From contig PDIP01000166.1 of the NCBI GenBank assembly GCA_002811645.1, positions 1-38,559 on the forward strand: a stretch of 38,559 nt of DNA, written 5' to 3'. This DNA comes from Corallochytrium limacisporum Hawaii. Lineage: Eukaryota > Protista > Pluriformea. The notes below the pieces were generated by a model. The model was not told the DNA's origin. It saw nothing but the letters and a program-made list of their open reading frames with translations, and did no database searches. Position numbers and translations under genes: made by a program. The stretch's first letter is position 1; every line of letters starts with the position of its first letter. Of this stretch, positions 523 through 36,032 are shown piece after piece.

Positions 523-1371
523 ATGGCCCCTGTGACCCGGTCTGGAGGCGTAACTGCCTCGAAGAAGACGGTCTTCCTGATCCACGGCTTCCCTAATGGA
601 CCCATCTTCTACAAGGAACTGATTACTGAGCTGTCGAAGGAACCGGGCGTAAACTGCGTCGTCCTCGATAGCCGCCACGGCATCGGTGGCTACCGGAACA
701 ATTACAGGCAAATGATCGAGCTATTCGACACCTACGCGGATGTCGAAGGTGAAAAAATCGTGATTGCTCACGATTGGGGAGCAGTCAACATGAACCACAT
801 TCTACGGAGCACCGCGCGCATGATACAGGAGAAGAAGACGGTGCCAAAGCACCTGCGGTTTGACAAGGTCGTGACCATGAGCATTCCTCTCACCCTGGTC
901 GAGCGCAACATTTACTCTGACGGTTTGAAGGCCGGCCTTGCACGGTGCTACCAAGTTATGTATGGGTCACTATATCTTCTGACCTACATTCCATATATCG
1001 GTCGGTTTTTGAGTTACCAAATGATGAGGCGGGTGCCAGATGCCACTGACGGAGAGTACGCTACGGGTTATGAGAGTTACTGGTACGTGAACCGTCTGGG
1101 GATCTTGATGGCCATCGGTGCCTTCATGCCTAAGGGACTCGGTTTAATCACCTGGAGCGCCTTGGATTGCCTGCCCCTGAAACAGGATGGCACGAAATTC
1201 CTGTATTTCCGCGGTGAGCAGGTCGACGCTCTTTTTAATGATGAACGCAGCGACGCAGATATGGGCATGCTAGGCGAAGTGAACGTGATCAAGGGCAATC
1301 ACTGGTTCCTGCGGAACCCGGATCACCTGCAGTTTGTGGCAGGGAGAATCAGGGCGTTCCTACGGGAATGA
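523..1371 (+). CDS. Alpha/beta-fold hydrolase, epoxide hydrolase-like (Asp nucleophile)
   Basis: 282-aa intronless ORF with the HGFP oxyanion motif, AHDWGA nucleophile elbow, a candidate acid in GEQVDALF and catalytic His in GNHW near the C-terminus. The cap region is Tyr-rich and hydrophobic. Confidence 0.85.
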   Translation: MAPVTRSGGVTASKKTVFLIHGFPNGPIFYKELITELSKEPGVNCVVLDSRHGIGGYRNNYRQMIELFDTYADVEGEKIVIAHDWGAVNMNHILRSTARMIQEKKTVPKHLRFDKVVTMSIPLTLVERNIYSDGLKAGLARCYQVMYGSLYLLTYIPYIGRFLSYQMMRRVPDATDGEYATGYESYWYVNRLGILMAIGAFMPKGLGLITWSALDCLPLKQDGTKFLYFRGEQVDALFNDERSDADMGMLGEVNVIKGNHWFLRNPDHLQFVAGRIRAFLRE

Positions 1372-3225
1372 GAACGATGATATTCACACTTGGGAATCCT
1401 GACCTGTAAATCTATCATCTAACTCAAATAGAAGCTCCTACCTGCCTACTGGCCCCGTATGTGAAGGTTCCATTGACTATACAGCCAGAGCTCTTCGTTC
1501 TCAGGTCACCCTTTCCCTAAGCATGCTAATCCAGCGAGTGTTAACCTCAGGGAAGCCCCCGTGCCCCACGATTCACCCCGGCGCACGAAGCCACCATGCT
1601 CCGGCGAGTTTGCAGTGCGGCGAACCCGCTTTCAACTACAGTCCTAACTGGCATGGGCGGCGAATATGCAAGAGTCCCAAACTGCTTATTTTAAAAATAC
1701 AGTATATATATTAATATCATAATACATATATATTTACTTTAGTAAATAAAATTTCCGTATATTAATAACATGGAGCGCCACGGGTCAGAATCTCTCTCCC
1801 TGGGAAACTAAATCAGCCGGTCAGGCGAAAAAATGTGCGTATTACCGATGGCTGAGATAGGCAACTGTAACGTTTGTATAGTAAATGTGTGTAATGTTTA
1901 CCAACAGAGTACGCAAAGGAGGCAATTTCTTCATCTACCTCGTCTTACCGGAGACCCAGTATGGAGCGATGCCTGATGTGCTCAGGTTTCCATAGTGAAA
2001 ACACGGGGAAAACCTAGGGATTGGTCACTCTTGGCGTTGAAAATATTTTCTTCAACCCGTGGAACCAGAGAGAAAAGCCAAAAGGTTTCCTTTTTCTCAT
2101 CACGATTTCTATGAGGCCGACAATTCAGTATTAAATATATGAGTGGCACATCGGACTTGTCCGTCCCAGTCGATCAGGTGTGGGAGCCACGAGACGGCTG
2201 CCGTTGGTTTCGGCCCCCAAGAGGTCGATCCAAGAAGCAATCAGAAGAAAAATTGTGGTTGTTTCAGTATTAAAGACAAATTCTTTCAAGACCAGACCAC
2301 CAACGTCGCCGCTCCATTGATGGGTGCGCGGTGGCTTCTGTGTGTGTGTGTGTATATTTTCTTCTCTCCGGGATTTTCCTTTTTGTCGCCAGGGGCCGTA
2401 ATACCATTAAATTACACCCGCACTTTTTGATATGCAAATTAGCCCCAAAGCACTGAGGGATCCGGTCGTGCCGGCATCGAGAGAGGGGCGGTGAGATCTC
2501 CCTCTCTCCCCCTAGGGCTCCGAGGAACAGAGGTCCTGCAAGCATGCCGGAAGGGAGCAGCTCAACGGTCACTCACTGAGTGTGCGGAGTGGATATTAGC
2601 CTCCGGGGCGATCGCGCACAAGCTCTCTTCTACCAAGGCACGCAATTGCGGCCACTCGTACCGCGGTTATGACACACACCACACTTCCAACGACTTGCCA
2701 TTGATGGAAATCGTTCGAAGGCGGGTGTGGGGTGGGTGGGGGAAGTTTATGACGGAAGCAGGCGAGATCGCCGAGCGTAGTTCGGACGGGCACATCAGGG
2801 ACCTGTCGAATTCCTTGATGCTCCTTGTTTCCAACAGGCTACAGGGAGCCGCAGACAAAGAGTACCATCACTGGGAGAGCAGATGGGAAAAATTGTTATT
2901 GAGTCCGTGCGAAAAGATGGGGGTGATCCTTGAAGGACCCGAAGCTCTACGGGGTATATAAGGTGTGTCCGTCGTCATTAACGAGAAATGTGAACAGGAT
3001 GTGTCAAACACCCAAGGATATACGATACCATTGGCATGTTCCGGGAGCATGCCATTTAGATTGTGACGGATTAATTTCGTTGCTCGGACAGAGAGACAAG
3101 AGTTTTTCCGCATATACACCACAGGATCACGACTGCACAGTTGTGGGCTTCGCTACAGAATATAAACAGATCACAGACTAGCGTGAGGAACCTATAATTC
3201 TGAAAGAAACCCAGAAGAAAGCAAT

Positions 3226-3798
3226 ATGGTAGATGGGACTTGCTCTTGCAGTTGCTGCCCTGCATCAGAACCTTCCTGCCCCGAGGGCAGCGACGATATC
3301 GTGGAACAGAGATTCGATACCACTAGTGACCAGTGCAACCCTAGCGGCTGTGCCTCGGAGTTCCCCAGCGACTGCAGCGAGAGCCAGAACATTTTCACAG
3401 ACTACGACGACAACGTGGGAGGCCTTACCTTCTCACATTTCTGGGAAATCATCCCAATAATTTTTGTTGTCATACTTGTTCTCATGTGCATATGCAGGCG
3501 CCGAAGAATGGTCATACGCCGCAGGGCAAGGCGTTGTCGTCAACAGCGAACTGGCGATATGCAGCAAGCTGAAGCTGGTATCGCCTCTCCAGACATGGCT
3601 CCAGCCAGCGCACCCCCGATGCAACCGAGCCCTGTTGCTGGTTCTTACCCTCCGACCGATGTACCACCTGCCATGTACCCGCCTCCAGGCTACAACGCCG
3701 GTGGCCCCAGCACTGGACCCAGCTTTGATGAGCCGCCGCCGTACTATCCTCCACCGGACTTGCCCGAGCCCCCGCCATCGAAGCACAGCCCGTATTGA
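3226..3798 (+). CDS. Single-pass membrane protein with Cys-rich N-terminus and Pro-rich PPxY tail (Shisa-like/WBP1/VOPP1-type architecture)
   Basis: 190 aa: 8 Cys in the first 50 residues, TM IIPIIFVVILVLM, then CIC and RRRR stop-transfer, then PPGY and PPPY motifs. TATAAA at 3161-3166. Confidence 0.8.
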   Translation: MVDGTCSCSCCPASEPSCPEGSDDIVEQRFDTTSDQCNPSGCASEFPSDCSESQNIFTDYDDNVGGLTFSHFWEIIPIIFVVILVLMCICRRRRMVIRRRARRCRQQRTGDMQQAEAGIASPDMAPASAPPMQPSPVAGSYPPTDVPPAMYPPPGYNAGGPSTGPSFDEPPPYYPPPDLPEPPPSKHSPY

Positions 3799-15648: not shown

Positions 15649-18600
15649 ATGGACTTCCTTGTAGCTTTGCAGCACCCCGCAAAGGAGCATTTTCCGGCCC
15701 TGCGGAGGTTGTGGGACCGGCTTCTTGACGCTTTGGGACAGCCTCCATCGTCTCGTGCGTCAAATAAATCCCTAGCGGAACTGCTCGCGAACCCCTGGGA
15801 GTGGCACAAAGCTCTCAGTGTGGCTGCCAACGACACTGTGGACTTTTTCGATGAATTGTTGCAGAATCCGGAACGGGAGGCCATATTTATTGTACTTGCG
15901 GTCATTCTCCTGGTACTGGTGCCACTGTTGATAGTTTTTTTCAATCGTCGGCGCCGAAACATGCGCAATCAAGACATTCTCAAGCGGGTCAACCCTTCTG
16001 CAACCGTATACAACGAAGAGGCCGGCACTTTCAAAGCCTTGCATGTCCTCATGCCGACTGATTTTACTCAACCCGTGTACTGCAACGTCTGTAGACAGTC
16101 TATCTTTGAGTTGGGTACGTCGACAGGTTTCCGGGGCTACCAATGCCTCGTCTGTGGCTACTCCTGTCACGAAGATAGGACTTGCCTGAGGGCGGGAGAG
16201 GCCGACGGACGGTGCAAAGGCGCCAGCATGGGCGACATCAGCACCAGCGTGATTGTTGAGGATGTCGATAGTGAGGACAACGCATGGAGCAGAATCCGTT
16301 TCCCACATCATTGGCGACAGGGGAATCCACCGTTGGGTGCATGGTGTTCAGTATGCCGCAGAGCCGGTGTTGGTGATGTGAACGCCCTGGCCGGCTACCA
16401 CTGTCTGTGGTGCCAAGCGGATGTGCACTCGGAAGGAGTGTACCTTACAGCAGAGGGTAAGCTGATGAGCGCACAACAGAGGTCATCGTCGCAGAGTCGA
16501 GTTGGCCAGCCAGACAGAGCTAATCTCAACGGTACGTCGCTGGGAGGAGCGTCGGGATCACGGGCCCGATCGCCAATCCCCGTGCCCGCTGATAGCCCGA
16601 GAATGCACGGGAGGAAGCTTGGAACCGGTGGCAAAACAGCCGCCAATCCGCAACGCAGCGTTTCTCTCGAATCCGGCCTGAGTGCAACGACCCTATCGAC
16701 AAGCACAGACCCGCAGGATAGTAGCACAGGCGCCCAAGGAGAAAGCAGCAGCAGGAGCACCGATAGAAGCGGCAATGTCAAGGAGGCTCACACCTGCTAC
16801 CATTACGTGCACGATGCCATCTGTACACTTGGCAAAAATCGTTCGTTGATCATCCCACCAGACGCGGTAGAGCCGGGGCCGGAGTTGTCGGCACAAAATG
16901 CATCGGTTTATTCCGAACTCTTGGATGAAGCACTGAGGGATAAGAATGGACTGAAGCTGCGGCACCGAAACGAAACGGTTGAAAAGTTGCGGACCCTTTG
17001 CTTTGGCAGCACGAGTGGCGGTGGGTCGATGGCATCGCTGCGAAATCTCTCGCCGTCAGCCACCAGAACTGGCAGCGCTAACGAATCGGCCAAGCAAAGG
17101 AAATCTAGGCCTGCGTCCCTTCCCTGCGCCGTACGCGCGGACTGGCTCAAACCTGACGTGCGCCCTCTGCTGGTGTTTGTCAATCCTTACAGTGGAGCTC
17201 AAGGCCGTGAGTGGGAATTGTGCCATTATTTCTACGGCCACCTTAACCCCTGCCAGGTCCTCCTCCTGAGACCGGGAACCACAACTCCCGTGGAACTGCT
17301 TGCACCGTTCTTGGCAATTCTTCATCGCTGCCGTGTGCTCATTTGCGGCGGTGACGGGACCATTGGTTGGGTTCTGAACACACTTGACGACCTCGGCTTC
17401 ACGGGCCCTAAGAAGAGCCCGTGGGTAGCGCTCTGTCCGACGGGCACCGGCAATGATCTTGCTCGCTGTCTCGGATGGGGCCGAGGACTAGCCGGTGTGG
17501 ACCTGGACACGTTGCTGCAGAGCGTCGCAGTGGCATCGAAGCAGCTTATGGATCGCTGGGCTCTGGTGACGCGTCCCTTGACGAAGCAGGACAAAGATGG
17601 AAGCTCCCACCGCCCTCGGGAAGGCAGTCCCAGCCCTATATCTCGCGAGCTCAGCGATGGAGATAGCGTCTACAGTGACGGCACGGGCGCACCCCCAACC
17701 CCAGCCATGGCTCCTGAGCCTGTGGAACACCCAGAGGACGCCGGCATCAGTGCCTTGGATGGCATTACCGAACTTATCGGGGAATCTGCACTGAAGCGGG
17801 GCAATGGTAAGGCCACAACGACGCAGATGGAGGAAGAATCGAATCTGATCGCCGCCGCGGCGGCAGTCGCCGCCGCGGCGGCACCAACGGCAGCCAAAGA
17901 GCCATCTCCGATGTCTCCAAATGGCTCAAGGTCTCTACTCCAACCCCAAACCTCGCCGAAACCCCCCAGTGCAGCGCAATCCAACAGGCGCAAAGATGGC
18001 CGTTTGATGGATAGTCCGCTGCTCAACCCGCTTGGACTGGGCCGCATTGGGCCATCGACGCCGCGCCAACACTTATCCGGTGCGCGCATTGCGGAGGAGG
18101 TTGAGGAGATGTCCAATGGCGCTGACAGAGATCCGAGGAGGGAATCGCCAATTACCCGCACCGGAGCTACCAGCGACAGCGCCCAGTCCAACAACACGGA
18201 CGGCCCAGCGTCCCGTAAGGGAAGCAACGACGACCTCAGGTTGTCTCCAGACTCTAGTGGCGTGACCGTACAGGTTACTAGCCAGGGATCGGGTCTGGTG
18301 AAGCGCTACTACAAACGTTTGGCACTCATGAACAATTACTTCAGCATCGGCGTCGATGCTGCAATCGTCAAGAATTTCCATTCCATCCGAGAGCAGTACC
18401 CGGGACTGTTCATCTCCCGCTGGCTAAACAAGATTCTCTACGGCATCGCTGGGCTGCAAGACATTATTGAAGCATCCTGCGCTGAGTTGCCCGAATATCT
18501 TGACGTGGAGATCGACGGTGTGTCCCTTCCTATGCCGGAGGGCATTCAGGGGGTCGTCTTCTTGAACATTGCCAGTTACGCAGGTGGCAAGAGACCCTAC

Positions 18601-18861
18601 CACGGCGATGGTGCCATCTCCACGGCCATGGATGATGGAGTATTTGAAGTCTTCGCCTTGATCAATTCGGCGCACACTGCACGAATTCAGGTTGGATTCG
18701 GATCAGTGGTGAAGCTTGGACAGGGCAGCCGCCTCAAGGTCACGAATCGCCGTGCCTTTCCCATGCAAGTGGATGGTGAGCCGTGGGTACAGCAGCCGTC
18801 CGTCATTCGCATGAGCAAGCATTCGACTGTGGGCATGCTCAGAAAGCAGGAGTCGGACTGA
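15649..18861 (+). CDS. DGK: Diacylglycerol kinase, DGK-epsilon-like (N-terminal TM, two C1 domains, split catalytic/accessory domain)
   Basis: 1070 aa. TM AIFIVLAVILLVLVPLLIVFF; C1A HVLMPTDF..CNVC..CLVC..CH; C1B HHWRQGN..CSVC..CLWC..VH; catalytic LVFVNPYSG, CGGDGT, GTGNDLAR; accessory MNNYFSIGVDA, NIASYAGG, DDGVFEV, MQVDGEPW. Confidence 0.95.
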   Translation: MDFLVALQHPAKEHFPALRRLWDRLLDALGQPPSSRASNKSLAELLANPWEWHKALSVAANDTVDFFDELLQNPEREAIFIVLAVILLVLVPLLIVFFNRRRRNMRNQDILKRVNPSATVYNEEAGTFKALHVLMPTDFTQPVYCNVCRQSIFELGTSTGFRGYQCLVCGYSCHEDRTCLRAGEADGRCKGASMGDISTSVIVEDVDSEDNAWSRIRFPHHWRQGNPPLGAWCSVCRRAGVGDVNALAGYHCLWCQADVHSEGVYLTAEGKLMSAQQRSSSQSRVGQPDRANLNGTSLGGASGSRARSPIPVPADSPRMHGRKLGTGGKTAANPQRSVSLESGLSATTLSTSTDPQDSSTGAQGESSSRSTDRSGNVKEAHTCYHYVHDAICTLGKNRSLIIPPDAVEPGPELSAQNASVYSELLDEALRDKNGLKLRHRNETVEKLRTLCFGSTSGGGSMASLRNLSPSATRTGSANESAKQRKSRPASLPCAVRADWLKPDVRPLLVFVNPYSGAQGREWELCHYFYGHLNPCQVLLLRPGTTTPVELLAPFLAILHRCRVLICGGDGTIGWVLNTLDDLGFTGPKKSPWVALCPTGTGNDLARCLGWGRGLAGVDLDTLLQSVAVASKQLMDRWALVTRPLTKQDKDGSSHRPREGSPSPISRELSDGDSVYSDGTGAPPTPAMAPEPVEHPEDAGISALDGITELIGESALKRGNGKATTTQMEEESNLIAAAAAVAAAAAPTAAKEPSPMSPNGSRSLLQPQTSPKPPSAAQSNRRKDGRLMDSPLLNPLGLGRIGPSTPRQHLSGARIAEEVEEMSNGADRDPRRESPITRTGATSDSAQSNNTDGPASRKGSNDDLRLSPDSSGVTVQVTSQGSGLVKRYYKRLALMNNYFSIGVDAAIVKNFHSIREQYPGLFISRWLNKILYGIAGLQDIIEASCAELPEYLDVEIDGVSLPMPEGIQGVVFLNIASYAGGKRPYHGDGAISTAMDDGVFEVFALINSAHTARIQVGFGSVVKLGQGSRLKVTNRRAFPMQVDGEPWVQQPSVIRMSKHSTVGMLRKQESD

Positions 18862-23024: not shown

Positions 23025-23935
23025 ACTATCCAATCCGGGACAGTTGCCACACAAGGGCTCAATCGGTCTAAATGACCTTTGATCATTTCAGTGTATTGAA
23101 AAATCTTTGACACATTGTGTCACGGGCAGAAACGCAGTACATACCCATACAGCATGAGCAGAAACATAGTTCACAGCCGGGAGCACACAGGTGCAACTCA
23201 TTGCCAACGTAATGATGATCACACACACAGTTTCGGAGCTTGTTTTCATGTATCATAAAAGCATTCTACTTTTACACCGTTATCTATTACTATGCTCAAA
23301 CCCCTAAGCCTCAGGTTTCATCTGTGGTTTACACATCTATTGAACATGCGACGGGTACATGCGACGGGCATCCTCATACGCAAGGGAAAGTCAATCCTGC
23401 CACCAAACTCTTCTTGGCCCCCCCTTGAGAGCTTAGTGGCACTACACGCCCCTCTCCCCGGGGAGGGGGGGCCCCCCCTCTCCTCCTGCCCTTCCCTGCC
23501 CCTGCGTCAGCCCATACAGAAGAAAGTCGGAGATGCCACAGAGGCAGGGAGCGGGTCCGTTGACATATCACGTCTCCGATAGTGAATGGCCCGGAGCAGG
23601 GTCAGGATTCCACCCGTGCAAAACGATAGGAAGCAGGGGGAGGACGGTTAGAATGCACAATGGGGAATCGTGATGTCATCTCGGAGGCTTTGTTGTGGAG
23701 AATCGAAATGTGCGCAGACTTTGCGATAAGTCGAACTCAATATGAGCATTTAGAGGTATTTGATCAACATATGCATGTACTGGCTACGCTCTATTTGAGC
23801 ACCGTATATACTCTTGGCTCCTGGTCCGAGGTTCCAATGTCTTGGCTCCGGTCCCTATCGATAGCACAACGCGTCAGACAGAATCATATTCGGAGATCAA
23901 ACCTATTCTTAAATCACCTTACACAACGTGCCACC

Positions 23936-24481
23936 ATGTCCACCACTCTATACAAGGATGTCCCTGGTGTTCACTCTGAGGTGCCCGAAGAGACTAAGGG
24001 CTTCGTCTTTCAACAGACCATGCTGCGGATCAAAGATCCCAAACGGTCCCTCGACTTTTACACCCGCATCATGGGCATGACTTTGGCACAGAAGCTAGAC
24101 TTTGAGCAATACGGCTTCTCTCTTTACTTCATGGTGAAGGTTCCTGACCCTTCAGTCATTCCGTTGGACGACAAGGAGCGCATGAAGTGGGTCTTTGACC
24201 ACGAGACCACCCTGGAACTCACCCACAACTATGGCACGGAGAAGGATGACAATTTCAGCTACCACGACGGGAACAAGGAGCCCAAGGGCTTTGGTCACAT
24301 TGGCTTCGCTGTCCCTGATGTCTACGAGGCCTGTGACCGGTTTGAGAAACTCGGGGTCGAATTCCAAAAGACGCCCAATGGTGGCGCAATGAAGGGTCTG
24401 GCATTTATCAAGGATCCGGACGGCTATTGGATTGAAATTTTGAACCGCGCCGGTCCCGGGGCCCAGAAGGTGCGAGAGTAA
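23936..24481 (+). CDS. GLO1: Glyoxalase I (lactoylglutathione lyase), single-domain Zn-type
   Basis: [34 protein letters not shown] and DPDGYWIEI carry the Q/E/H/E metal ligands. Start placed at GCCACCATG (23936), giving 181 aa; the upstream in-frame extension shows no recognisable homology. Confidence 0.96.
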
Positions 24482-24630
24482 GGAAGACATTTTGTCCCAA
24501 GGTACACGCACAACGACGCACAAAAGGCGAACGCGCTGGGCCAAATCTTGGTGGGTACTGATGTGTCACTAAAGGTAGAATTCTTTATCTCACAAAATTT
24601 ATTTGTGTTGGTGTTTTTGTGTACGTTTCA

Positions 24631-24663
24631 GTGATGGTGATGGTGATGGTGATGGTGATGATG
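24631..24663 (+). repeat. (GTGATG)5 plus ATG microsatellite between convergent GLO1 and PIN-like genes
   Basis: Read directly from the sequence. Confidence 0.9.
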
Positions 24664-24751
24664 TTTGCTATTTTACAATGAATCTAAGGATGATACGTAG
24701 TTAAAAGGATATGTCACGCATTGCTGTTGACCGCAAAATCTTTGTCTCCGC

Positions 24752-26668
24752 TTATATGTTTTGCACAATCTGCTGGTACAAGATGGTGATTGGCATCGCC
24801 ATCAGGGTGCTGATGGTGACCATGCCACTGAGGTAGGTTTGGTCGAGCTGGTGCTCCGGAGTGGCACTCGAGGCTGCGATCGTGTGCGCAGAGATGGCCT
24901 GGGGCATGCTGGAAAGGAGAAGAAGGATTTCTCCAGATTCTCGGGGCAGTCCTGCCATGGTCATCAGCGACACGGCACAGAGCATAACTAAGGGACCACC
25001 TACCCAGCGCAGCACCAGACCAGACAATAGGTACTTCTTTTTGCAAGGAATCAGTCCAGACTCGTGCAACTGGAAGCCAATAATGTACACTGACAAGGGA
25101 CCATTAAGTGCGGCCAGCTGACTGACAGCTTCCGTCACAAGCTCTGGCATTTCGTAGTTGAAAACGTTCTGACTGACACTCAGTACGATAGCAAGGATGG
25201 AGATGTGGATCAGATGATTGGTGGCAATGATCTTTGCCACGATCTTGACCATAGCGTAGGCACGAATGCCAGCCTCTTGAGCTACTGACACCGGCATAGA
25301 CCGCTGAGACCAGGCAATACCGCTGACGCCACCTAGAGACTGAGTGTCAGCAAGAAAGCCACCGCCATTGGCGACGTCGTGCATGGTCGATAGTGAAGCG
25401 CGTCCATCTGCGTCAACACTGAGAGCATCATGGGAAGGCACCTGAACATTGCTGGCGTTTTGGTGATGGTGCCCACGCATCCGCCGCACGGGCAAGGGGG
25501 AACGCATCAAGCTCTCAACGTCATAGATATTGTGGTTGTTGTGGCTGGTGTTGTCAGCGGGCAGAACCACACCACCGGACAAAACGTTGTTGTCATCGTC
25601 TGCAATACTGTCTACGTCAGGAAGGTGCCGGTGGCGCCGTCGCGTCTCGTTGCGTGCTACAATGTTCTCGAGGACAACATTGTTCCAACTCACACCAGGA
25701 CCATTATCGGGCATGGTCCGTGCTGACATGGGGCGGCCGTTCTTCTCATCGTCCTCGTCACCATAGTCGGAATCATCAGAGTCGCGCTTGAGATTGACCT
25801 TGCGCGTGGTCATAGGGGTGAGCACCGTGGATACCCCATAGATATCTTGTATCTTTTGAACGGAGACAGCCTTGCCATTCGTGTCTCTGGCATGGTTTGG
25901 ATGTGGCCGGGCATCCATATAGATGGCGGTGTCATCTGGCTTCAGGCCACCGGCCAAAGCGGGAGGTGGCGCAATTGACGAGGACACAGAGTCCGGTATT
26001 TCGTCCACGCTTCGCCGTCCTGCGCTATTGGCAGAAAACATTGAGTCGACACTGGCGTTGAAGGCGTTCGTGTTCTGTTGCTGCTGTTGGTATTCGTCGT
26101 CATAGTCGAACTCAAAATCTGGAATGCACTGACTCTTAGCTTCCGCAATGACATCATTCAGTTTGATGATTTCGTAGAAGCTAAACTGAATCGGCACCTG
26201 GACGGCGTTCTGGAAGAGGATGTAAATGATCAACACACGGTCGGCAACTTCCTGAGGATAGACGGCTGTGAGGATGGGTCGACCCAAAATAACGCTGTTG
26301 GCGATCATCAGTGTCGCGACGATGGTTGGATAGTTAGTGAAAGTTAGCGTCGGCATTGTCCAAGGAATCCATGAAGGCTTCGTGGCTGCGACAGAATTCC
26401 AAGCGAGGATGCCCAAGCCGGAGACAATGTAAGAGAACAGAATGTATAGAGTGATGGTGATGGCAGTATTACCGTCAAGCTGAGTGAAGTCTGTGGCAAT
26501 CACAAGATCTAGAATGAAAGCAGGGATGGCAATTCGTGTGACCACGGTACCAAGTTGCTTGGCTCCCGCTGCGGTGTTCCATTTTAGATGTGCTCCTAAC
26601 CAACCAAGGACGAGTGAAGCATACACGGGTGCGAGATTGACTGCAATGTCATAGTACTGATTACCCAT
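24752..26668 (-). CDS. PIN-like auxin efflux carrier family (Mem_trans/AEC) transporter with long central loop
   Basis: 638 aa from MGNQYY (ATG at 26668). Five hydrophobic segments, an approximately 295-aa polar loop, then five more. Motifs LAPVYASLVLG, RIAIP, ANSVILGRPILTAVY, LFQ..FSFYE, RWVGGPLVM, MPQAI, LSGMVTISTLMAMPITILY. Confidence 0.88.
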   Translation of the reverse strand: MGNQYYDIAVNLAPVYASLVLGWLGAHLKWNTAAGAKQLGTVVTRIAIPAFILDLVIATDFTQLDGNTAITITLYILFSYIVSGLGILAWNSVAATKPSWIPWTMPTLTFTNYPTIVATLMIANSVILGRPILTAVYPQEVADRVLIIYILFQNAVQVPIQFSFYEIIKLNDVIAEAKSQCIPDFEFDYDDEYQQQQQNTNAFNASVDSMFSANSAGRRSVDEIPDSVSSSIAPPPALAGGLKPDDTAIYMDARPHPNHARDTNGKAVSVQKIQDIYGVSTVLTPMTTRKVNLKRDSDDSDYGDEDDEKNGRPMSARTMPDNGPGVSWNNVVLENIVARNETRRRHRHLPDVDSIADDDNNVLSGGVVLPADNTSHNNHNIYDVESLMRSPLPVRRMRGHHHQNASNVQVPSHDALSVDADGRASLSTMHDVANGGGFLADTQSLGGVSGIAWSQRSMPVSVAQEAGIRAYAMVKIVAKIIATNHLIHISILAIVLSVSQNVFNYEMPELVTEAVSQLAALNGPLSVYIIGFQLHESGLIPCKKKYLLSGLVLRWVGGPLVMLCAVSLMTMAGLPRESGEILLLLSSMPQAISAHTIAASSATPEHQLDQTYLSGMVTISTLMAMPITILYQQIVQNI

Positions 26669-27184
26669 TCTTTGATTAAAATGCTCTAACCGTACTTTAT
26701 TCCCTTCTTTGCAAGCGCGAGTGAGCACAGAAGAACCGTCCCACGAACCCGATCTTCGGGACTTTGATCTCAAATACCAAAGATTCCACATACACACCAA
26801 AAAGTTGTGGTGTTCACAGTATGCGACAGTCTCCTTACGCGCTGCGAGTTTATTCACCGTGCAAGAGTCGACATAAGTGTTTGTCGACTTCGCGCCTAAA
26901 CGACGAGAGTGGAGAACTAGAAGACTCCAAAGAACAGCAGGGAAACCGATTTCAGAGTAAACTCTGCAGACGTCTAACATAACGGAACAAGAAATCCACT
27001 CCCTGAGTTAGCCAATGACCTATATGTGTTCGTCGCAGCGAGAACCCATGGCCATGGTGAAGCCATGAGAGCATGGGGCGGTTGATGGTGCACTTGTGGG
27101 CTGTGAAGCCGAAGGGGGAAAAGGGGGGCGGGGGGAGGGGGAGGCGAACTTGACAGGGCGAAGGGTCTGCGTGGGTGGGGCTAA

Positions 27185-27250
27185 GATTAATTCATGTGTT
27201 TTATTATTGTCTTATTGTCTCAGTGAACGAAGAAAACACATGAATTAATC
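27185..27250. repeat. Perfect 18-bp inverted repeat (hairpin) abutting a gap
   Basis: GATTAATTCATGTGTTTT (27185-27202) and AAAACACATGAATTAATC (27233-27250). Confidence 0.85.
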
Positions 27251-29037
27251 NNNNNNNNNNNNNNNNNNNNNNNNNNNNNNNNNNNNNNNNNNNNNNNNNN
27301 NNNNNNNNNNNNNNNNNNNNNNNNNNNNNNNNNNNNNNNNNNNNNNNNNNNNNNNNNNNNNNNNNNNNNNNNNNNNNNNNNNNNNNNNNNNNNNNNNNNN
27401 NNNNNNNNNNNNNNNNNNNNNNNNNNNNNNNNNNNNNNNNNNNNNNNNNNNNNNNNNNNNNNNNNNNNNNNNNNNNNNNNNNNNNNNNNNNNNNNNNNNN
27501 NNNNNNNNNNNNNNNNNNNNNNNNNNNNNNNNNNNNNNNNNAGAAAAAGAAAAGGAGGAAAGATCGAGAGATGGGGAAGGGTGGGAGAGAGGAGGGAGGT
27601 GGGGGGAGGGGGAAGGGGGTGGGTCACACCGGTAGAAAATTGTTTGTCACCAACCCGCCTGGTCCTGTATTCTTTTCTTTTTGTCCTTGAATGTTTCGTA
27701 GACTCCTACCGTGGTCCCCCGGTCCAAGCCTCCCTTACCGTCCCCTCTCCCTTTCTCCTTCACTGCTCGCGCTATCTTCGGTGCTTCGCAATTTTTGGAC
27801 TTGCGAGCGAGAGAAGGAGAGAAAAGAGAGAGAGGGCGCCCTTTCTGGTTCTCGTCTGGGAGAGTTTGTTTCTCTGTGGTTTTGAAAACAGTTTCACGCG
27901 AGAACAATACCAAGAACGAGCCCTCGATGTTGTATCAACTCTCGTACCAAACTGCGCGTCGCCTACGAAGGTGCAGGATACGAATCACATACCTTAGAAG
28001 GCGATTTCATGGGGGTTTTAAAGGTGTCCCTGGGTGTTTCACACCGACGCGCTCCGAGAACAAGCCAATAAAAGATCATCGCGTTCCTTAGCTGTTCAGG
28101 CAGCTCCACTACTACTCAACCGTGTCTCCTTATGCTGTTACACCAAGTGCAAACCTGCACACAATCGAGAAATCGAGGGTTTTGTGGGGTCGCGCAGCCC
28201 TGGCAAGGGAAAAAAGAACACAGAATGATTCGGAACCCCCAGAGGATCAGAAAGAGTAGGAACGTGGTGGAATGTTAAGCCCATTTTGGGGCTCACGCTG
28301 CAAGGTTGACTGCCACGACGTCAATGTTTTGAATACTCTGTCTCGGGGCTACCAAGGCGAGGTGACCAAAAGATTCATGTTTATGGTGATGCCGGCTACA
28401 TGCTGAAGGAGGTAGATAGTAATGAGCGATGGCGGAGGAGAACGTCAACCTCCGAAATCTCCCTAGGGAAGGCGCTGCCGAAGATGGAGACATCGTAGGG
28501 AGCGGCGCACAGAGAGTGTAACAGCGATCCCCATCCACTACTACCAATGGTGCTGAAGTTGCTGTGTGACATCAGCGAATATGGCAACCCTCCCAAGTCC
28601 CATCAAAACAATTTGTTTGTTGTTGATCCTTCTGCTGCATCATCACATTCTTGGACATGCTAAATATATCAGCTGCCTCGCCATAGTACTTGCATGGAAT
28701 TGTACAAGTAAGGAAGGCAGACATCGCTATTTTTGCACAACCGGGGAGCACTGCCACAGGCGGACGAAATGTCGCCTGTGCCGCCGGCTTTACTTCCACC
28801 TGTGTACGCATGGGTCAAAAGTATCAAGTCTTTGGGTCTTATTACCTGGGTCCTGTGTAATACATATTTGGGAATGTTCATGATGAAAAATTAAGAACAC
28901 AAATATAGGAATTGCGAGGGCCTCGGCACACTAAGACAAATTTGTAGTTTTGTTTGGTACGGTTTTCTTTAACCAATGAACCGTCGCAAGAGGGGACAGG
29001 AAGAGGCCCCCCTCTCCCCCCCCCCCCAAGGGGGAGA

Positions 29038-30494: not shown

Positions 30495-32327
30495 AAATAG
30501 AAACAGAGCACGCTCGCCTCCCTCCCCCTTTCTCTCCCACTCGAGTTACCTCCGCATTCAGTTCTAAATGTATGGGAATCCGTTTTCTCGATCGTGGCGC
30601 AACCATCGGTCTTCATTGTACAATCAGCTGATAGCAACACTGTCGAAGAGCAGTTCATACATTGGGTACGGAAGCTCAGCGTTTTGGCCTCCCCAAACGT
30701 GGACACCAAGCTAATTCAAGCCAAGGTGAATACCACAACCAGCTTGGTGGAGAAGGCTGATTAGCCTTCGAATGAAATACTCTTTGTGCGAAGCTGTGAT
30801 CATCATTGTGGGCATGCCACTGCGCACTGTGTTTTTTTTTTGAGTTTATTGGCCACACCATATATCAAAAGTGTACACACGCCCAACATTGTCACTCTGT
30901 ACAATGTACCACCGCCAACTGCAGGACCTGTGTAACAATTGCCGCCCCGCAAGAGAGCATACCTCCTGCCGTTTCATTCCCCCAGCTGAGAGGTGGCTCA
31001 CAATGCTAAACCGTCTCCGATGATACATACTTAACCATTGGGGGCTGTGTCATTGGGACATCATGCGCCGTTGCCTTGCAGCCCACACTCCTTCGCTCAC
31101 TGCACTTCACACATTCCACCTAGGAAGGTTATTCTCCCAAACGGCCATGACTCAAAGGTACGCCTGACTGATGAGCCCACTGTGTTCCACTTTTGCATCA
31201 TCAGCAAGGAGGTAAGCAGTATGCCGAGGATACCTAGCTCACACACTGTGGGTTCGATGAGCTGGTATCATGGAGCGCATTGAAAAGCAGTGAGAGGTAG
31301 ATAGTTGGTACCAGTTCCATTTCAGGGAACTCTTGGCGTTTCATAAGCGTTGAAGTGCTCGTATACAATTCTACCAGTTTCTGGCACAAGGTGCGGTTCT
31401 AAGGACACGGCTTTGTGACGCTAAAGGGTCATACTTTAAGGGCTTACAATGCGAGAGAGGCAGAAGCTTTCGACTGCTCTCAAGGCGTCGCTGTCGCTGT
31501 TGGCTACGCCACCGACGCCTTGGGTTGCAGTGACCGGCAACCAATTCTGACCATTTCCAAGAGTCGAAACTCATTGCAAACAATGGCCCGGTTATCAATG
31601 CTGTTTATGTCTTGGGGAGAGGCCCTTCACATCATTCTCGGGACCACCAATAACGTTGACTGGATGATGCAAAGTGAAGGAAACACAGAAAGGAGGCACT
31701 GTGGAAGCATCAGTCTCCCGGAAGACACATCCTACAGCTGTGCATGAACCTATGCCGTTGTGTCCTGTGGTACATACCCAACAATGTTATATGGATACCC
31801 GTCTCGAGGACTCTAAGTGAGCAAGCCCTTTCGTTAGCACGACGTCGACTTGGATGGAGCACCTCGCAAGGAGCCGCACGGGGGGGGGCTGGTCACCCTA
31901 GGCAATGGTACCTCATGTTTTCTCAAAAATAGGCCCCGGACCCAGGCCCGACGGTGCGTCAGAGAGCGTGTATTTGTATTGGCTTTTTTCCTCGTACCTA
32001 CCCGGAATCAAGCAGGGCCAAACACCAGTCCCTTCCTTCCTCGGAGAGGTATGGGAGGGCTGGCGGTGGGGCCGGACTCCGGTTGACTCTACTTCGTCTG
32101 CCGGAGGTTTGTTATGGTCCCCGTCCAGACAGTGTGACTCCTTTGTATGAAGTGGCGGGGATTTGGGTGCGCGAATTTGGACCTTGGTACGTCCATTATG
32201 TAGTCAATAGCTCTTCTTGGATCCGCTCTCTCTTCACTGAACAGTCTGTGGTATTTGGTGAGTGGTTCACAGACAATGCTGTGTTGAAGACTAAGTGTTG
32301 AGCCATGTTTTAGTGTATCAGGTCAGT

Positions 32328-33497
32328 ATGCTTGACTTTAATCCTGTTCAGGCCTTTGTGGTGGCTCTCACTGTAGGGTGCTACGTGGGCATTGTACAAC
32401 GTCGTAAGCAGAATGCCTTCCCCTTGGCAGAGTATGAAGAACTGCCGACTGACACCCCGGCCGACGCAAAGCGCAAGGTAGTTGTGACAGGTGGCGCAGG
32501 CTTCCTTGGTAACGTGATTGTCCGGCAGCTTTTGGAACGTGGTGATTCGGCTGTCACTTGCTTCGATGTCCTTATTCCAAAGCAGAAATACCCCGGAGTC
32601 AGGTACATCAAGGGTGACGTTCGGGTTAGGGAGCATCTGGAGAGGGCATTCGAGGACCAAGACAGCGTGATCCATGTGGCTAGTATTTTACCTGGTGTTG
32701 GTCGGGACCAAATTATCCCCGTCATCAACGTCGAAGGAACCAAAAATGTAGTTGATGCGTGTGGCAAGCAGGCGGTGTCGCGTTTAGTTTACACATCCAG
32801 TGCCACTGTAGCCATCGAAAAGGACGACCGCAGTGTAGCTAACTGCAAGGAAACTGAAGGTTATCCAGATCAGACCATCGATGTGTACACCGAATCCAAG
32901 GTGGTGGCAGAGAAGCTCGTTCTCGGTGCGAATTCAGAGACTCTCCACACCTCCGTGTGCCGTCCTGGAGCAGTCTTTGGTCCCGGTGACAAACAAATTA
33001 CTGATATGTACGTACGGGGCGAAGCAAATTTCTGTATCGGTGAAGGTGAGCATGATATTGATTGGATACATGTAGATAGCGTTGCCCATGGACATGTTTT
33101 AGCAGAGGAACACATGGTTAAGGGTGATCCCGCGTGTGGTGAGGCGTTTAATATCACTAGTTCTACACCCATGAAGTATCGAAACTTCCGTGGTACCAAG
33201 GAAGTCAATGTCGGTAAATCAACCAATCACTGGGGCCACCCCCCGGCTGATATTATGCCCATCAATATTGTCTATGCACTGGCCCTTTTCAATGAGTGGT
33301 GCTACGCACTGACATCTATAATCCCTCTTGGTCCTGAGCTTACCTTGATGGCTATTGATTTTACACAGCGTACTTACTGGTTTAACACTGACAAGGCACG
33401 CAAATTGCTGGGCTATAAGCCGTTGTACACCACTGACGAAGGGATTAAGAGGACTCGCGAAGTCTATGAAGCGTCTTTGAAGCCCAAGAATGCATAG
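32328..33497 (+). CDS. 3-beta-hydroxysteroid dehydrogenase/NSDHL(ERG26)-family extended SDR with N-terminal membrane anchor
   Basis: 389 aa from the first ATG. VVTGGAGFLG NAD site, VIHVAS, INVEGTKNVVDAC, LVYTSSATV, catalytic YTESK, RPGAVFGPGD, HVLAEE..ACGEAFNIT, KARKLLGYKP. Confidence 0.92.
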   Translation: MLDFNPVQAFVVALTVGCYVGIVQRRKQNAFPLAEYEELPTDTPADAKRKVVVTGGAGFLGNVIVRQLLERGDSAVTCFDVLIPKQKYPGVRYIKGDVRVREHLERAFEDQDSVIHVASILPGVGRDQIIPVINVEGTKNVVDACGKQAVSRLVYTSSATVAIEKDDRSVANCKETEGYPDQTIDVYTESKVVAEKLVLGANSETLHTSVCRPGAVFGPGDKQITDMYVRGEANFCIGEGEHDIDWIHVDSVAHGHVLAEEHMVKGDPACGEAFNITSSTPMKYRNFRGTKEVNVGKSTNHWGHPPADIMPINIVYALALFNEWCYALTSIIPLGPELTLMAIDFTQRTYWFNTDKARKLLGYKPLYTTDEGIKRTREVYEASLKPKNA

Positions 33498-34475: not shown

Positions 34476-36032
34476 ACGCGTACTACGCTCTGTGTCCCCC
34501 CTGAACGCCACGAGCTCGATCTCTTCACAACCCCACACTTCCCCCCCTCCCCGGGGGCCGGGGGGTGAGGAAGTCTACACATCGCCCGGTGCCTTATCGC
34601 TCTCCAACTGAAGCGTCTTTCTTCTGTATTGGTTGGCTCGCGACTCACGAAAAAAGTGACCAGGAGAAAACAACGAAAGTGCACCGGGAGCGGGACAGGC
34701 AAGCGCGCGAGACCAAAGTGCCTGACCAAAATGAACCAACAGGCCCAAAGCACAGAAATCTTTCTTTTTGGCTTGCGATTTTTTGTGTTTGTCATTTTAA
34801 TTTCAGATATTGCAGAACCTTCTTCAGCTCCACGGGCTAGGCATGTCACGACTGAGTTCTCCCCCCCCCCCCCGGGGGGGGGGGGNNNNNNNNNNNNNNN
34901 NNNNNNNNNNNNNNNNNNNNNNNNNNNNNNNNNNNNNNNNNNNNNNNNNNNNNNNNNNNNNNNNNNNNNNNNNNNNNNNNNNNNNNNNNNNNNNNNNNNN
35001 NNNNNNNNNNNNNNNNNNNNNNNNNNNNNNNNNNNNNNNNNNNNNNNNNNNNNNNNNNNNNNNNNNNNNNNNNNNNNNNNNNNNNNNNNNNNNNNNNNNN
35101 NNNNNNNNNNNNNNNNNNNNNNNNNNNNNNNNNNNNNNNNNNNNNNNNNNNNNNNNNNNNNNNNNNNNNNNNNNNNNNNNNNNNNNNNNNNNNNNNNNNN
35201 NNNNNNNNNNNNNNNNNNNNNNNNNNNNNNNNNNNNNNNNNNNNNNNNNNNNNNNNNNNNNNNNNNNNNNNNNNNNNNNNNNNNNNNNNNNNNNNNNNNN
35301 NNNNNNNNNNNNNNNNNNNNNNNNNNNNNNNNNNNNNNNNNNNNNNNNNNNNNNNNNNNNNNNNNNNNNNNNNNNNNNNNNNNNNNNNNNNNNNNNNNNN
35401 NNNNNNNNNNNNNNNNNNNNNNNNNNNNNNNNNNNNNNNNNNNNNNNNNNNNNNNNNNNNNNNNNNNNNNNNNNNNNNNNNNNNNNNNNNNNNNNNNNNN
35501 NNNNNNNNNNNNNNNNNNNNNNNNNNNNNNNNNNNNNNNNNNNNNNNNNNNNNNNNNNNNNNNNNNNNNNNNNNNNNNNNNNNNNNNNNNNNNNNNNNNN
35601 NNNNNNNNNNNNNNNNNNNNNNNNNNNNNNNNNNNNNNNNNNNNNNNNNNNNNNNNNNNNNNNNNNNNNNNNNNNNNNNNNNNNNNNNNNNNNNNNNNNN
35701 NNNNNNNNNNNNNNNNNNNNNNNNNNNNNNNNNNNNNNNNNNNNNNNNNNNNNNNNNNNNNNNNNNNNNNNNNNNNNNNNNNNNNNNNNNNNNNNNNNNN
35801 NNNNNNNNNNNNNNNNNNNNNNNNNNNNNNNNNNNNNNNNNNNNNNNNNNNNNNNNNNNNNNNNGTGTGTGTGCGTCGGAGTATGGTTATGAGCGTGTAG
35901 GCGGTTCGTTGAGTGGTCCGTTCGTTTTGGGTACTGACGGTGCAAGGGGGGCGGGCCGGGGGGGGGGAAGTGTGGGGTTGTGAAGAGATCGAGCTCGTGG
36001 CGTTCAGGGGGGACACAGAGCGTAATACGCGT
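34476..36032. mobile_element. Candidate TIR-bounded (MITE/foldback-like) element with interior mostly in a gap
   Basis: 34476-34547 and 35961-36032 are inverted copies matching at 71 of 72 nt. No target-site duplication or transposase is visible. Confidence 0.45.

Follow-up and report, generated by a model that had tools for sequence, protein, structure and literature searches.

The window analyzed here is a stretch of 38,559 nucleotides (nt) from Corallochytrium limacisporum Hawaii (assembly GCA_002811645.1, contig PDIP01000166.1, positions 1 to 38,559 of the forward strand). On its minus strand lies a gene for a putative PIN-like carrier of the Mem_trans or auxin efflux carrier (AEC) family, accompanied by ordinary eukaryotic genes (Table 1). 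C. limacisporum is a holozoan, and NCBI places the species in Opisthokonta. Its gene models bear the prefix Clim_evm in EukProt, and two paralogs of the carrier elsewhere in the assembly are 100% identical to such models (Table 1). A sequence-only reading of the window had described the gene as a plant long-PIN-like auxin carrier in an apparently non-plant, opisthokont-like genome. The view of the host is confirmed by the taxonomy and by the eukaryotic flanking genes. That of a PIN-fold carrier in a non-plant opisthokont is likewise borne out, by the Pfam match, the predicted structure, the trees and the host itself.

The gene is part of a minus-strand open reading frame (24752..26980). From the Met at 26668 it encodes a protein of 638 amino acids (aa), which is recognized by the Mem_trans / Auxin Efflux Carrier profile (PF03547, TC 2.A.69) over residues 9-631 (E 9.2e-22, 77.5 bits against a curated cut-off of 25.7 bits, profile positions 3-342 of 343). 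Contigs from two public runs of two studies (X1 and X2, the RNA nature of which is only guessed) were placed on the gene. The X2 contig spans 24670-26713 unbroken, and X1 contributes two contigs (24575-26106 and 26180-26702), also without joints. They end 34-45 nt upstream of Met 26668, and the depth is zero over 26722-27900 in either run. This pattern supports a transcriptome-like origin of the contigs over the gene. Since the contigs are unbroken and stop just upstream, the gene is read as a single exon that starts at Met 26668, and the absence of introns claimed earlier holds. The upstream ATG at 26980 was considered as start and rejected: the contigs reach no further than about 26702-26713, and the N termini of the homologues align with Met 26668.

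The X2 contig originates from a strain slightly different from that of the assembly, with 12 differences within the coding sequence (CDS). Ten of these are synonymous (third-position) and two are replacements (Q274E and L349I), both conservative and both located in the central loop. The loop thereby carries six synonymous and two replacement differences, and in the transmembrane halves 4/4 are synonymous. Because of this ratio of 10 synonymous to 2 replacement differences, it is concluded that the gene is under purifying selection, the loop included.

Table 1. Features of the carrier gene and its neighbours in the window, and related genes elsewhere in the assembly (M1-M10, membrane helices; AF2, AlphaFold2)
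Feature	Position	Strand	Remarks
Diacylglycerol kinase, 1070 aa, two C1 domains	15649-18861	+	ordinary eukaryotic neighbour
Glyoxalase I gene	23660-24481	+	convergent with the carrier gene
Complete intronless CDS of the carrier	24752..26668	-	638 codons + stop (24752-24754); Mem_trans/AEC protein, predicted member of the eukaryotic PIN-like clade
C-terminal half M6-M10, residues 461-638	24755..25288	-	AF2 helices 461-503, 509-537, 544-570, 576-586/592-601, 604-637
Pro589-Gln590 codons, M9 crossover PQ	24899..24904	-	kept; aligned to PIN8/PIN1 LPQG
Central hydrophilic loop, residues 182-460 (~280 aa)	25289..26125	-	acidic, D/S/N-rich
N-terminal half M1-M5, residues 1-181	26126..26668	-	AF2 helices 2-27, 33-58, 66-95, 110-121/125-136, 139-181
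Asn124 codon (= PIN8 Asn117)	26297..26299	-	kept; HMMER alignment
Short 5' untranslated stretch	26669..26713	-	contig ends at 26702 (X1) and 26713 (X2)
3-beta-hydroxysteroid dehydrogenase/isomerase family gene	32295-33497	+	ordinary eukaryotic neighbour
Sister paralog, 573 aa	contig C99 (locus 1477-3198)	-	100% identical to EukProt Clim_evm43s99
Short-loop PIN-like paralog, 389 aa	contig C3 (locus 1459-2628)	+	100% identical to EukProt Clim_evm29s3
LYCHOS/GPR155-type gene, 814 aa	contig C184 ~71767-74211 (locus 1300-3744)	+	match to human LYCHOS

The AF2 model of the protein, built from an alignment of 34 rows, contains ten membrane helices, five in each of two bundles (residues 1-181 and 461-638), where the predicted local distance difference test (pLDDT) score is mostly >90. 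Helix M4 is broken at Asn124 and M9 at Pro589, which gives the crossover by which the family is recognized, and M5 continues as a long helix to residue 181. In the HMMER alignments the N-terminal half corresponds to PIN8 9-159, and the C-terminal half to PIN8 214-363 and PIN1 461-617. A Foldseek search with the model returned PIN8 (9g0w_A) with a target-normalised template modeling (TM) score of 0.91 (root-mean-square deviation 3.0 A). The score was 0.80 for the PIN-like domain of LYCHOS taken by itself and about 0.78 for PIN1 and PIN3, with other crossover carriers (SbtA, ASBT, SLC9) far behind. The superposition on PIN1 and PIN8 that had been suggested as a check thus came out in favor of the fold. 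The layout proposed from the letters alone (five helices, a loop of ~295 aa rich in Ser, Asp and Asn, and five further helices) agrees, coordinates included, with the reading frame, the Pfam match, the AF2 model and the composition.

The protein is very divergent. Its best match is the sister paralog encoded on contig C99, with 31% identity (E 9e-35), and an exhaustive phmmer search of 1.84 billion representatives (E up to 0.001) matched only 21 proteins. In this search the C99 paralog comes first, followed by three proteins from the ichthyosporean Amoebidium parasiticum and by proteins from Mesostigma, Paulinella, Aristolochia ('PIN6-like') and Avena. The remaining matches are bacterial or unnamed metagenomic proteins of 200-320 aa. 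Nine rows carry a name or a source organism, i.e. the listed eukaryotes and one bacterial AEC, and the other 11 are unnamed. Among the solved structures the window protein by itself finds PIN8 (5e-7), PIN1 (3e-6), PIN3 (2e-4) and LYCHOS (0.05). A two-row profile (window protein and C99) reaches 1.4e-21 for PIN8, 4.5e-15 for PIN1 and 2e-5 for LYCHOS. A further profile, A3, was made of the three Amoebidium proteins, C3, Paulinella P0013 and the metagenomic P0003, with the window protein excluded, and yields 1e-72 for PIN1 and 3e-21 for LYCHOS. The PIN-trained NCBIfam model TIGR00946 gives the window protein 83 bits against a cut-off of 246, and 443 bits to the plant PIN6-like protein.

When the entire assembly (24.1 Mb, 286 contigs) was searched with Pfam, four Mem_trans genes and no further one were detected: the window gene and those on C99, C3 and C184. 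This small, intron-poor genome would accordingly hold three stand-alone genes of the PIN clade next to one LYCHOS-type gene. The C184 protein matches human LYCHOS with 1e-43 (residues 56-547 against 33-516), from the PIN-like domain into the helices resembling a G protein-coupled receptor (GPCR), and Pfam found no DEP domain in it. The C99 paralog has its own unrelated central loop of ~220 aa, and ~45 extra aa are inserted between its M3 and M4. In the C3 paralog a Ser is aligned to the near-universal Asn of the M4 crossover, and the M9 motif is PI, not PQ. Because of these two substitutions, C3 may differ in function.

Trees were calculated for 34 proteins: the four Corallochytrium paralogs, the Amoebidium, Mesostigma, Paulinella, plant and metagenome matches, a DEP-bearing GPR155-like protein, Escherichia coli YfdV (K-12 record) and 19 bacterial or metagenomic AEC. 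The first tree was built with LG+C20+F+G4 from 314 columns, and a second alignment was made with L-INS-i after removal of long rows. The window protein and C99 form a pair (support 99/99), with a branch of 1.33 for the window protein against 0.66 for C99, so that the former is the faster-evolving copy. Twelve stand-alone eukaryotic PIN-like rows, the plant PINs among them, form one clade, with support of 98/93 in the first and 99/96 in the second alignment. The GPR155-like pair, to which C184 belongs, is sister to this clade (94/82), and with the second alignment the sister position is not resolved. In no tree does YfdV or any bacterial row fall within the eukaryotic clade. In the approximately unbiased (AU) test, a position of the window pair outside the eukaryotic PIN and GPR155 group was rejected (p-AU 0.006), and so was its union with the GPR155-like clade (p-AU 0.035). 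A single clade of all holozoan stand-alone proteins was not rejected (p-AU 0.19).

This topology agrees with that of Vosolsobe et al. (bioRxiv 10.1101/2024.06.26.600818), in which the eukaryotic PINs are monophyletic with GPR155, and the PILS and fungal proteins make up another deep lineage (AEC III). In the same preprint, PIN homologues are reported as patchy in Salpingoeca rosetta and Sphaeroforma arctica, and YfdV is placed in AEC II beside the PINs, on the PIN side of the PIN/PILS split. The window protein should be separate from PILS, because it lies nearer to the PINs than YfdV does, which itself sits on the PIN side. As judged from these trees, it is a member of the eukaryotic PIN clade sensu lato (AEC II), grouping with the plant PINs to the exclusion of the sampled bacterial AEC. 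A phylogeny with PIN, PILS, GPR155 and bacterial AEC had been suggested as a check. It was run with PIN, GPR155 and bacterial AEC, and on this sampling the expected grouping stood.

In the central loop, residues 217-453 are predicted to be disordered (pLDDT <50). The residues between the two halves are rich in Asp, Ser, Ala, Val and Asn and have a net charge of -16, and a single basophilic site, KRDS (294-297), adjoins an acidic run. The TPRxS motif was not found in the loop, just as the sequence-only reading had stated, nor was any other reproducible canonical PIN loop motif. The length of the linker was measured from the conserved Glu at the end of M5 to the Asn at the start of M6. It amounts to 317 aa in the window protein, 219 in C99, 89 in C3, 137-158 in Amoebidium, 80-247 in the plant rows and 716 in Mesostigma, compared to 10-28 in the bacterial and 27-32 in the GPR155-like rows. 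All 12 of the 12 aligned stand-alone eukaryotic PIN-like proteins therefore possess an expanded TM5-TM6 linker (80-716 aa), which makes the expansion a shared trait of the clade, with lineage-specific length and sequence. Central, disordered and taxon-unique loops have in fact been described for eukaryotic Mem_trans proteins, Ichthyosporea included (Dabravolski and Isayenkov, 2022, PMC9330825). The plant long-PIN architecture hence loses the special status it had been given. The idea of an independently expanded loop fared better: no significant likeness to the loops of the sister paralog (best E 0.46), PIN1 or PIN3 was detected, and the loop looks like a lineage-specific expansion.

The key residues were mapped by HMMER alignment to the PIN8 and PIN1 chains and by the columns of the tree alignment. 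The motif pairs listed in the sequence-only reading were reproduced in the HMMER alignments to both chains. For the roles of the PIN8 residues we follow Ung et al. 2022 (PMC9477730). In PIN8 (Asn117) and LYCHOS (Asn145), the Asn of the M4 crossover binds the substrate carboxylate (PMC9477730, PMC11525196). Besides this Asn and the Pro-Gln of the M9 crossover (Table 1), PIN8 Gln145 (Gln153) and Ile51 (Ile48) are kept in the window protein. PIN8 Pro116 of M4, Tyr150 and Gln320 are changed to Ala123, Val158 and Leu585, respectively. What had been said of the pocket is thereby confirmed, i.e. that its Asn, its Gln and the second crossover Pro are retained, and that the first crossover Pro and the pocket Tyr have become Ala and Val. 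At the support site, PIN8 Asp75, Gln78 and Lys79 are replaced by Ile72, Tyr75 and Ile76, and there is no charged residue anywhere in M3 of the window protein. The Asp75-Lys79 pair is described as fully conserved and as essential in PIN8, where D75N, K79Q and Q78A abolish transport and Y150A has very low activity (PMC9477730).

Across the alignment, the Pro of M9 is present in 33/33 covering rows (the Mesostigma row stops short of it) and the Asn of M4 in 32/34. The M9 position reads PQ in 9/11 covered stand-alone eukaryotic PIN-like rows (PH in Paulinella and PI in C3), PT in the GPR155-like rows, and P followed by T, V, S, A, G, M or P in the bacterial rows. Only the plant, Mesostigma and P0003/P0069 rows have the Asp-Lys pair of the support site. 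Because the holozoan (Amoebidium and Corallochytrium), Paulinella, GPR155-like and bacterial rows all lack it, the pair seems to be a speciality of the streptophyte type and not a requirement of the family. LYCHOS and C184 retain the Lys without the Asp, and both lack the Pro of M4.

The plant PINs (PIN8, PIN1 and PIN3; PDB 7qp9, 9g0w, 7y9t, 7wks) share with the window protein the ten-helix inverted-repeat fold, the M4/M9 crossover, the clade, the crossover Asn, the bridging Gln, the Pro-Gln of M9 and a long hydrophilic M5-M6 loop. The window protein differs from them in its score below the cut-off of the PIN model, in the replacement of Asp75-Lys79, Gln78, the M4 Pro and Tyr150, and in a loop without PIN motifs. 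The PIN-clade proteins of other unicellular holozoans and protists (Amoebidium, Sphaeroforma arctica, Salpingoeca rosetta) are likewise stand-alone, with an expanded central loop, and belong to the clade of the plant PINs. The Amoebidium proteins also lack the Asp-Lys pair, but unlike the window protein they keep the Pro of M4, and the profile that contains them matches PIN1 far more strongly (1e-72). The loop of the window protein is about twice as long as theirs (317 versus 137-158 aa), and the protein forms with C99 a long branch of its own.

LYCHOS (GPR155) resembles the window protein in its PIN-like fold, in the retained Asn of M4 and Pro of M9 and in the absence of the M4 Pro. The window protein, however, ends after M10, without the fused GPCR-like seven-helix domain and without the DEP domain of the animal proteins (Pfam detects Mem_trans only), and the LYCHOS-type proteins have a short linker (27-32 aa) and a clade to themselves. 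PILS and the AEC proteins of fungi are of the same Pfam family, occur in opisthokonts and often have a central loop, and are set apart by their assignment to AEC III in the preprint. One of the fungal AEC, FgAec1 of Fusarium graminearum, has been linked to the efflux of indole-3-acetic acid (IAA) (PMC12577076). The bacterial AEC (E. coli YfdV, MdcF, MleP), presumed organic-acid carriers, have the same core with the Asn of M4 and the Pro of M9, but they are ~300 aa long, have a linker of 10-28 aa and lie outside the eukaryotic clade. When annotated plasmids were searched with tblastn, C3 gave no match, and a bacterial AEC query returned only generic 'AEC family transporter' labels.

From these comparisons, the protein is rather probably a stand-alone eukaryotic PIN-like carrier that performs the elevator-type uniport of a small organic anion and carries a regulatory cytosolic loop. 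The two inverted five-helix repeats, with the crossover of the broken M4 and M9, would form the carrier core. Asn124, Gln153 and Pro589-Gln590 correspond to the residues with which PIN8 grips the substrate carboxylate and connects it with the remainder of the protein, and may do the same here. As in the PINs, the protein would probably dimerize through its scaffold helices (M1, M2, M6 and M7), while the transport domain (M3-5 and M8-10) would rock the pocket across the membrane. The anion would be moved down its electrochemical gradient, out of the cytosol. The loop is predicted by homology to face the cytosol and most likely carries phosphorylation or trafficking signals. Because the Asp-Lys pair, the Pro of M4 and the pocket Tyr are replaced, the substrate range and kinetics probably differ from those of the plant PINs. 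IAA is one candidate among aromatic or other carboxylates.

Several points weigh against a carrier of this kind. Three residues essential in PIN8 (Asp75, Gln78 and Lys79) appear here as Ile72, Tyr75 and Ile76, and a site that leaves PIN8 with very low activity when changed to Ala (Tyr150) appears as Val158. LYCHOS, in which the M4 Pro is likewise lost, binds IAA without readily transporting it (PMC11525196). The dimer, the orientation of the loop and its phosphorylation are carried over from homologues, the tree set covers PIN-like, GPR155-like and bacterial AEC rows only, and the RNA status of the X1 and X2 runs is a guess. From the residue losses and the behavior of LYCHOS, it follows that a carrier function is likely but not safe, and that plant-like transport of IAA should not be assumed.

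The same losses would also fit a membrane protein that binds a ligand or has a regulatory role. It would be the stand-alone equivalent of the LYCHOS PIN-like domain, in which an anion drives a change of shape without net transport. The faster evolution of the window copy within its pair (1.33 versus 0.66) points in this direction as well. The Asp-Lys pair is, however, equally absent from all bacterial AEC and Amoebidium rows, the universal Asn and Pro are still in place, as is the bridging Gln, no signalling domain is fused, and the union with the GPR155-like clade was rejected in the AU test. Such a protein is considered unlikely here. In its original form, the proposal of a stand-alone relative of the GPR155 domain is further disfavored by the presence of a separate LYCHOS-type gene in the genome. 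The strong divergence of the protein and the 21 matches in 1.84 billion could be read as signs of a decaying or functionless duplicate. The intact frame of 638 codons, the transcript-like contigs in two studies, the 10 synonymous versus 2 replacement differences (4/4 synonymous in the transmembrane halves) and the retained catalytic-type residues speak against it, and this scenario hardly deserves credence.

Very unlikely, too, is a protein of the PILS type (AEC III) or a generic bacterial-type malate/malonate permease, perhaps acquired from bacteria. The long branch and the composition of the tree set would leave room for it, and PILS-type AEC are universal in fungi, the second large group of opisthokonts (bioRxiv 10.1101/2024.06.26.600818). 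Yet the clade shared with the plant PINs excludes YfdV and every bacterial row, a placement outside was rejected, and the protein is nearer to the PINs than YfdV, which the preprint counts to the PIN side. Furthermore, no PILS-named and no fungal protein is found among the nine named phmmer rows (11 are unnamed), and the nearest clusters in the ESM Atlas are Parabasalia AEC and streptophyte PIN. An orthologue of the canonical long PINs, with a loop homologous to the plant loop and regulated since before the plant-opisthokont split, is more improbable still. Its support is a single stretch of the loop, residues 218-260 (25889-26017, minus strand), which resembles the loop of the PIN6-like protein (RRS..PDS..SSIA) at a similar distance from M5. 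The Smith-Waterman score of 56 was reached by 5-7 of 1000 shuffles (p about 0.006). The C99 loop does not contain the segment (E 0.46) and scores 39 against the PIN6-like loop (shuffle mean 36), and a PDB search with residues 218-260, run to E 10, brought up no PIN1 or PIN3 chain. The best PDB match of residues 240-268 is an antibody framework 3 (LKPEDTAVYYCAR), which looks like chance. As the match was not replicated against PIN1 or PIN3, homology to the canonical PIN loops was rejected and the match treated as chance. The missing TPRxS site and the 83 of 246 bits with TIGR00946 point the same way. The comparison with canonical PINs thus failed on the profile, on Asp75-Lys79 and on the loop motifs. 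The window protein is neither a canonical long PIN nor, in the narrow sense, a relative of the LYCHOS domain.

The stand-alone PIN-like carrier, as the preferred reading, can be extended to a bolder scenario, one that is quite unlikely as it stands: Corallochytrium would have kept the two states side by side (three stand-alone genes, and a LYCHOS-type gene that lacks DEP), and the window protein, controlled by its loop, would export an indolic or other aromatic acid. If true, this would offer a living model of the way in which a PIN-type transporter turned into the sensing module of an mTORC1 regulator in animals. The gene set may also bear on the origin of the PIN-like domain in LYCHOS, the lysosomal cholesterol sensor of animals. 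PIN-clade genes in unicellular holozoans and their sister relation to GPR155 are already published (bioRxiv 10.1101/2024.06.26.600818), and so are the central loops (PMC9330825). The gene therefore adds a data point and a test system, not a new kind of protein. A literature search returned no relevant paper on Corallochytrium and auxin or naming Corallochytrium in the context of PIN carriers, and a search for contigs encoding the exact protein found none on record. What PIN-type carriers transport outside plants, and what roles they play there, is named as an open question in the preprint. Corallochytrium would be a convenient system for studying the substrates of such a carrier in a relative of animals and the need for the Asp-Lys pair.

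Among the other features of the window, the diacylglycerol kinase and the 3-beta-hydroxysteroid dehydrogenase genes have no evident connection to the carrier. Runs of N (assembly gaps) are located at 27220-27627 and at ~35000-36000, the second of which appears as a GC value of 0.08 in the composition profile. The glyoxalase I gene lies on separate contigs, with a word depth ~8- to 15-fold above that of the carrier gene. Its X1 contig starts at 23782, inside the listed open reading frame, and the true start may be a later Met.

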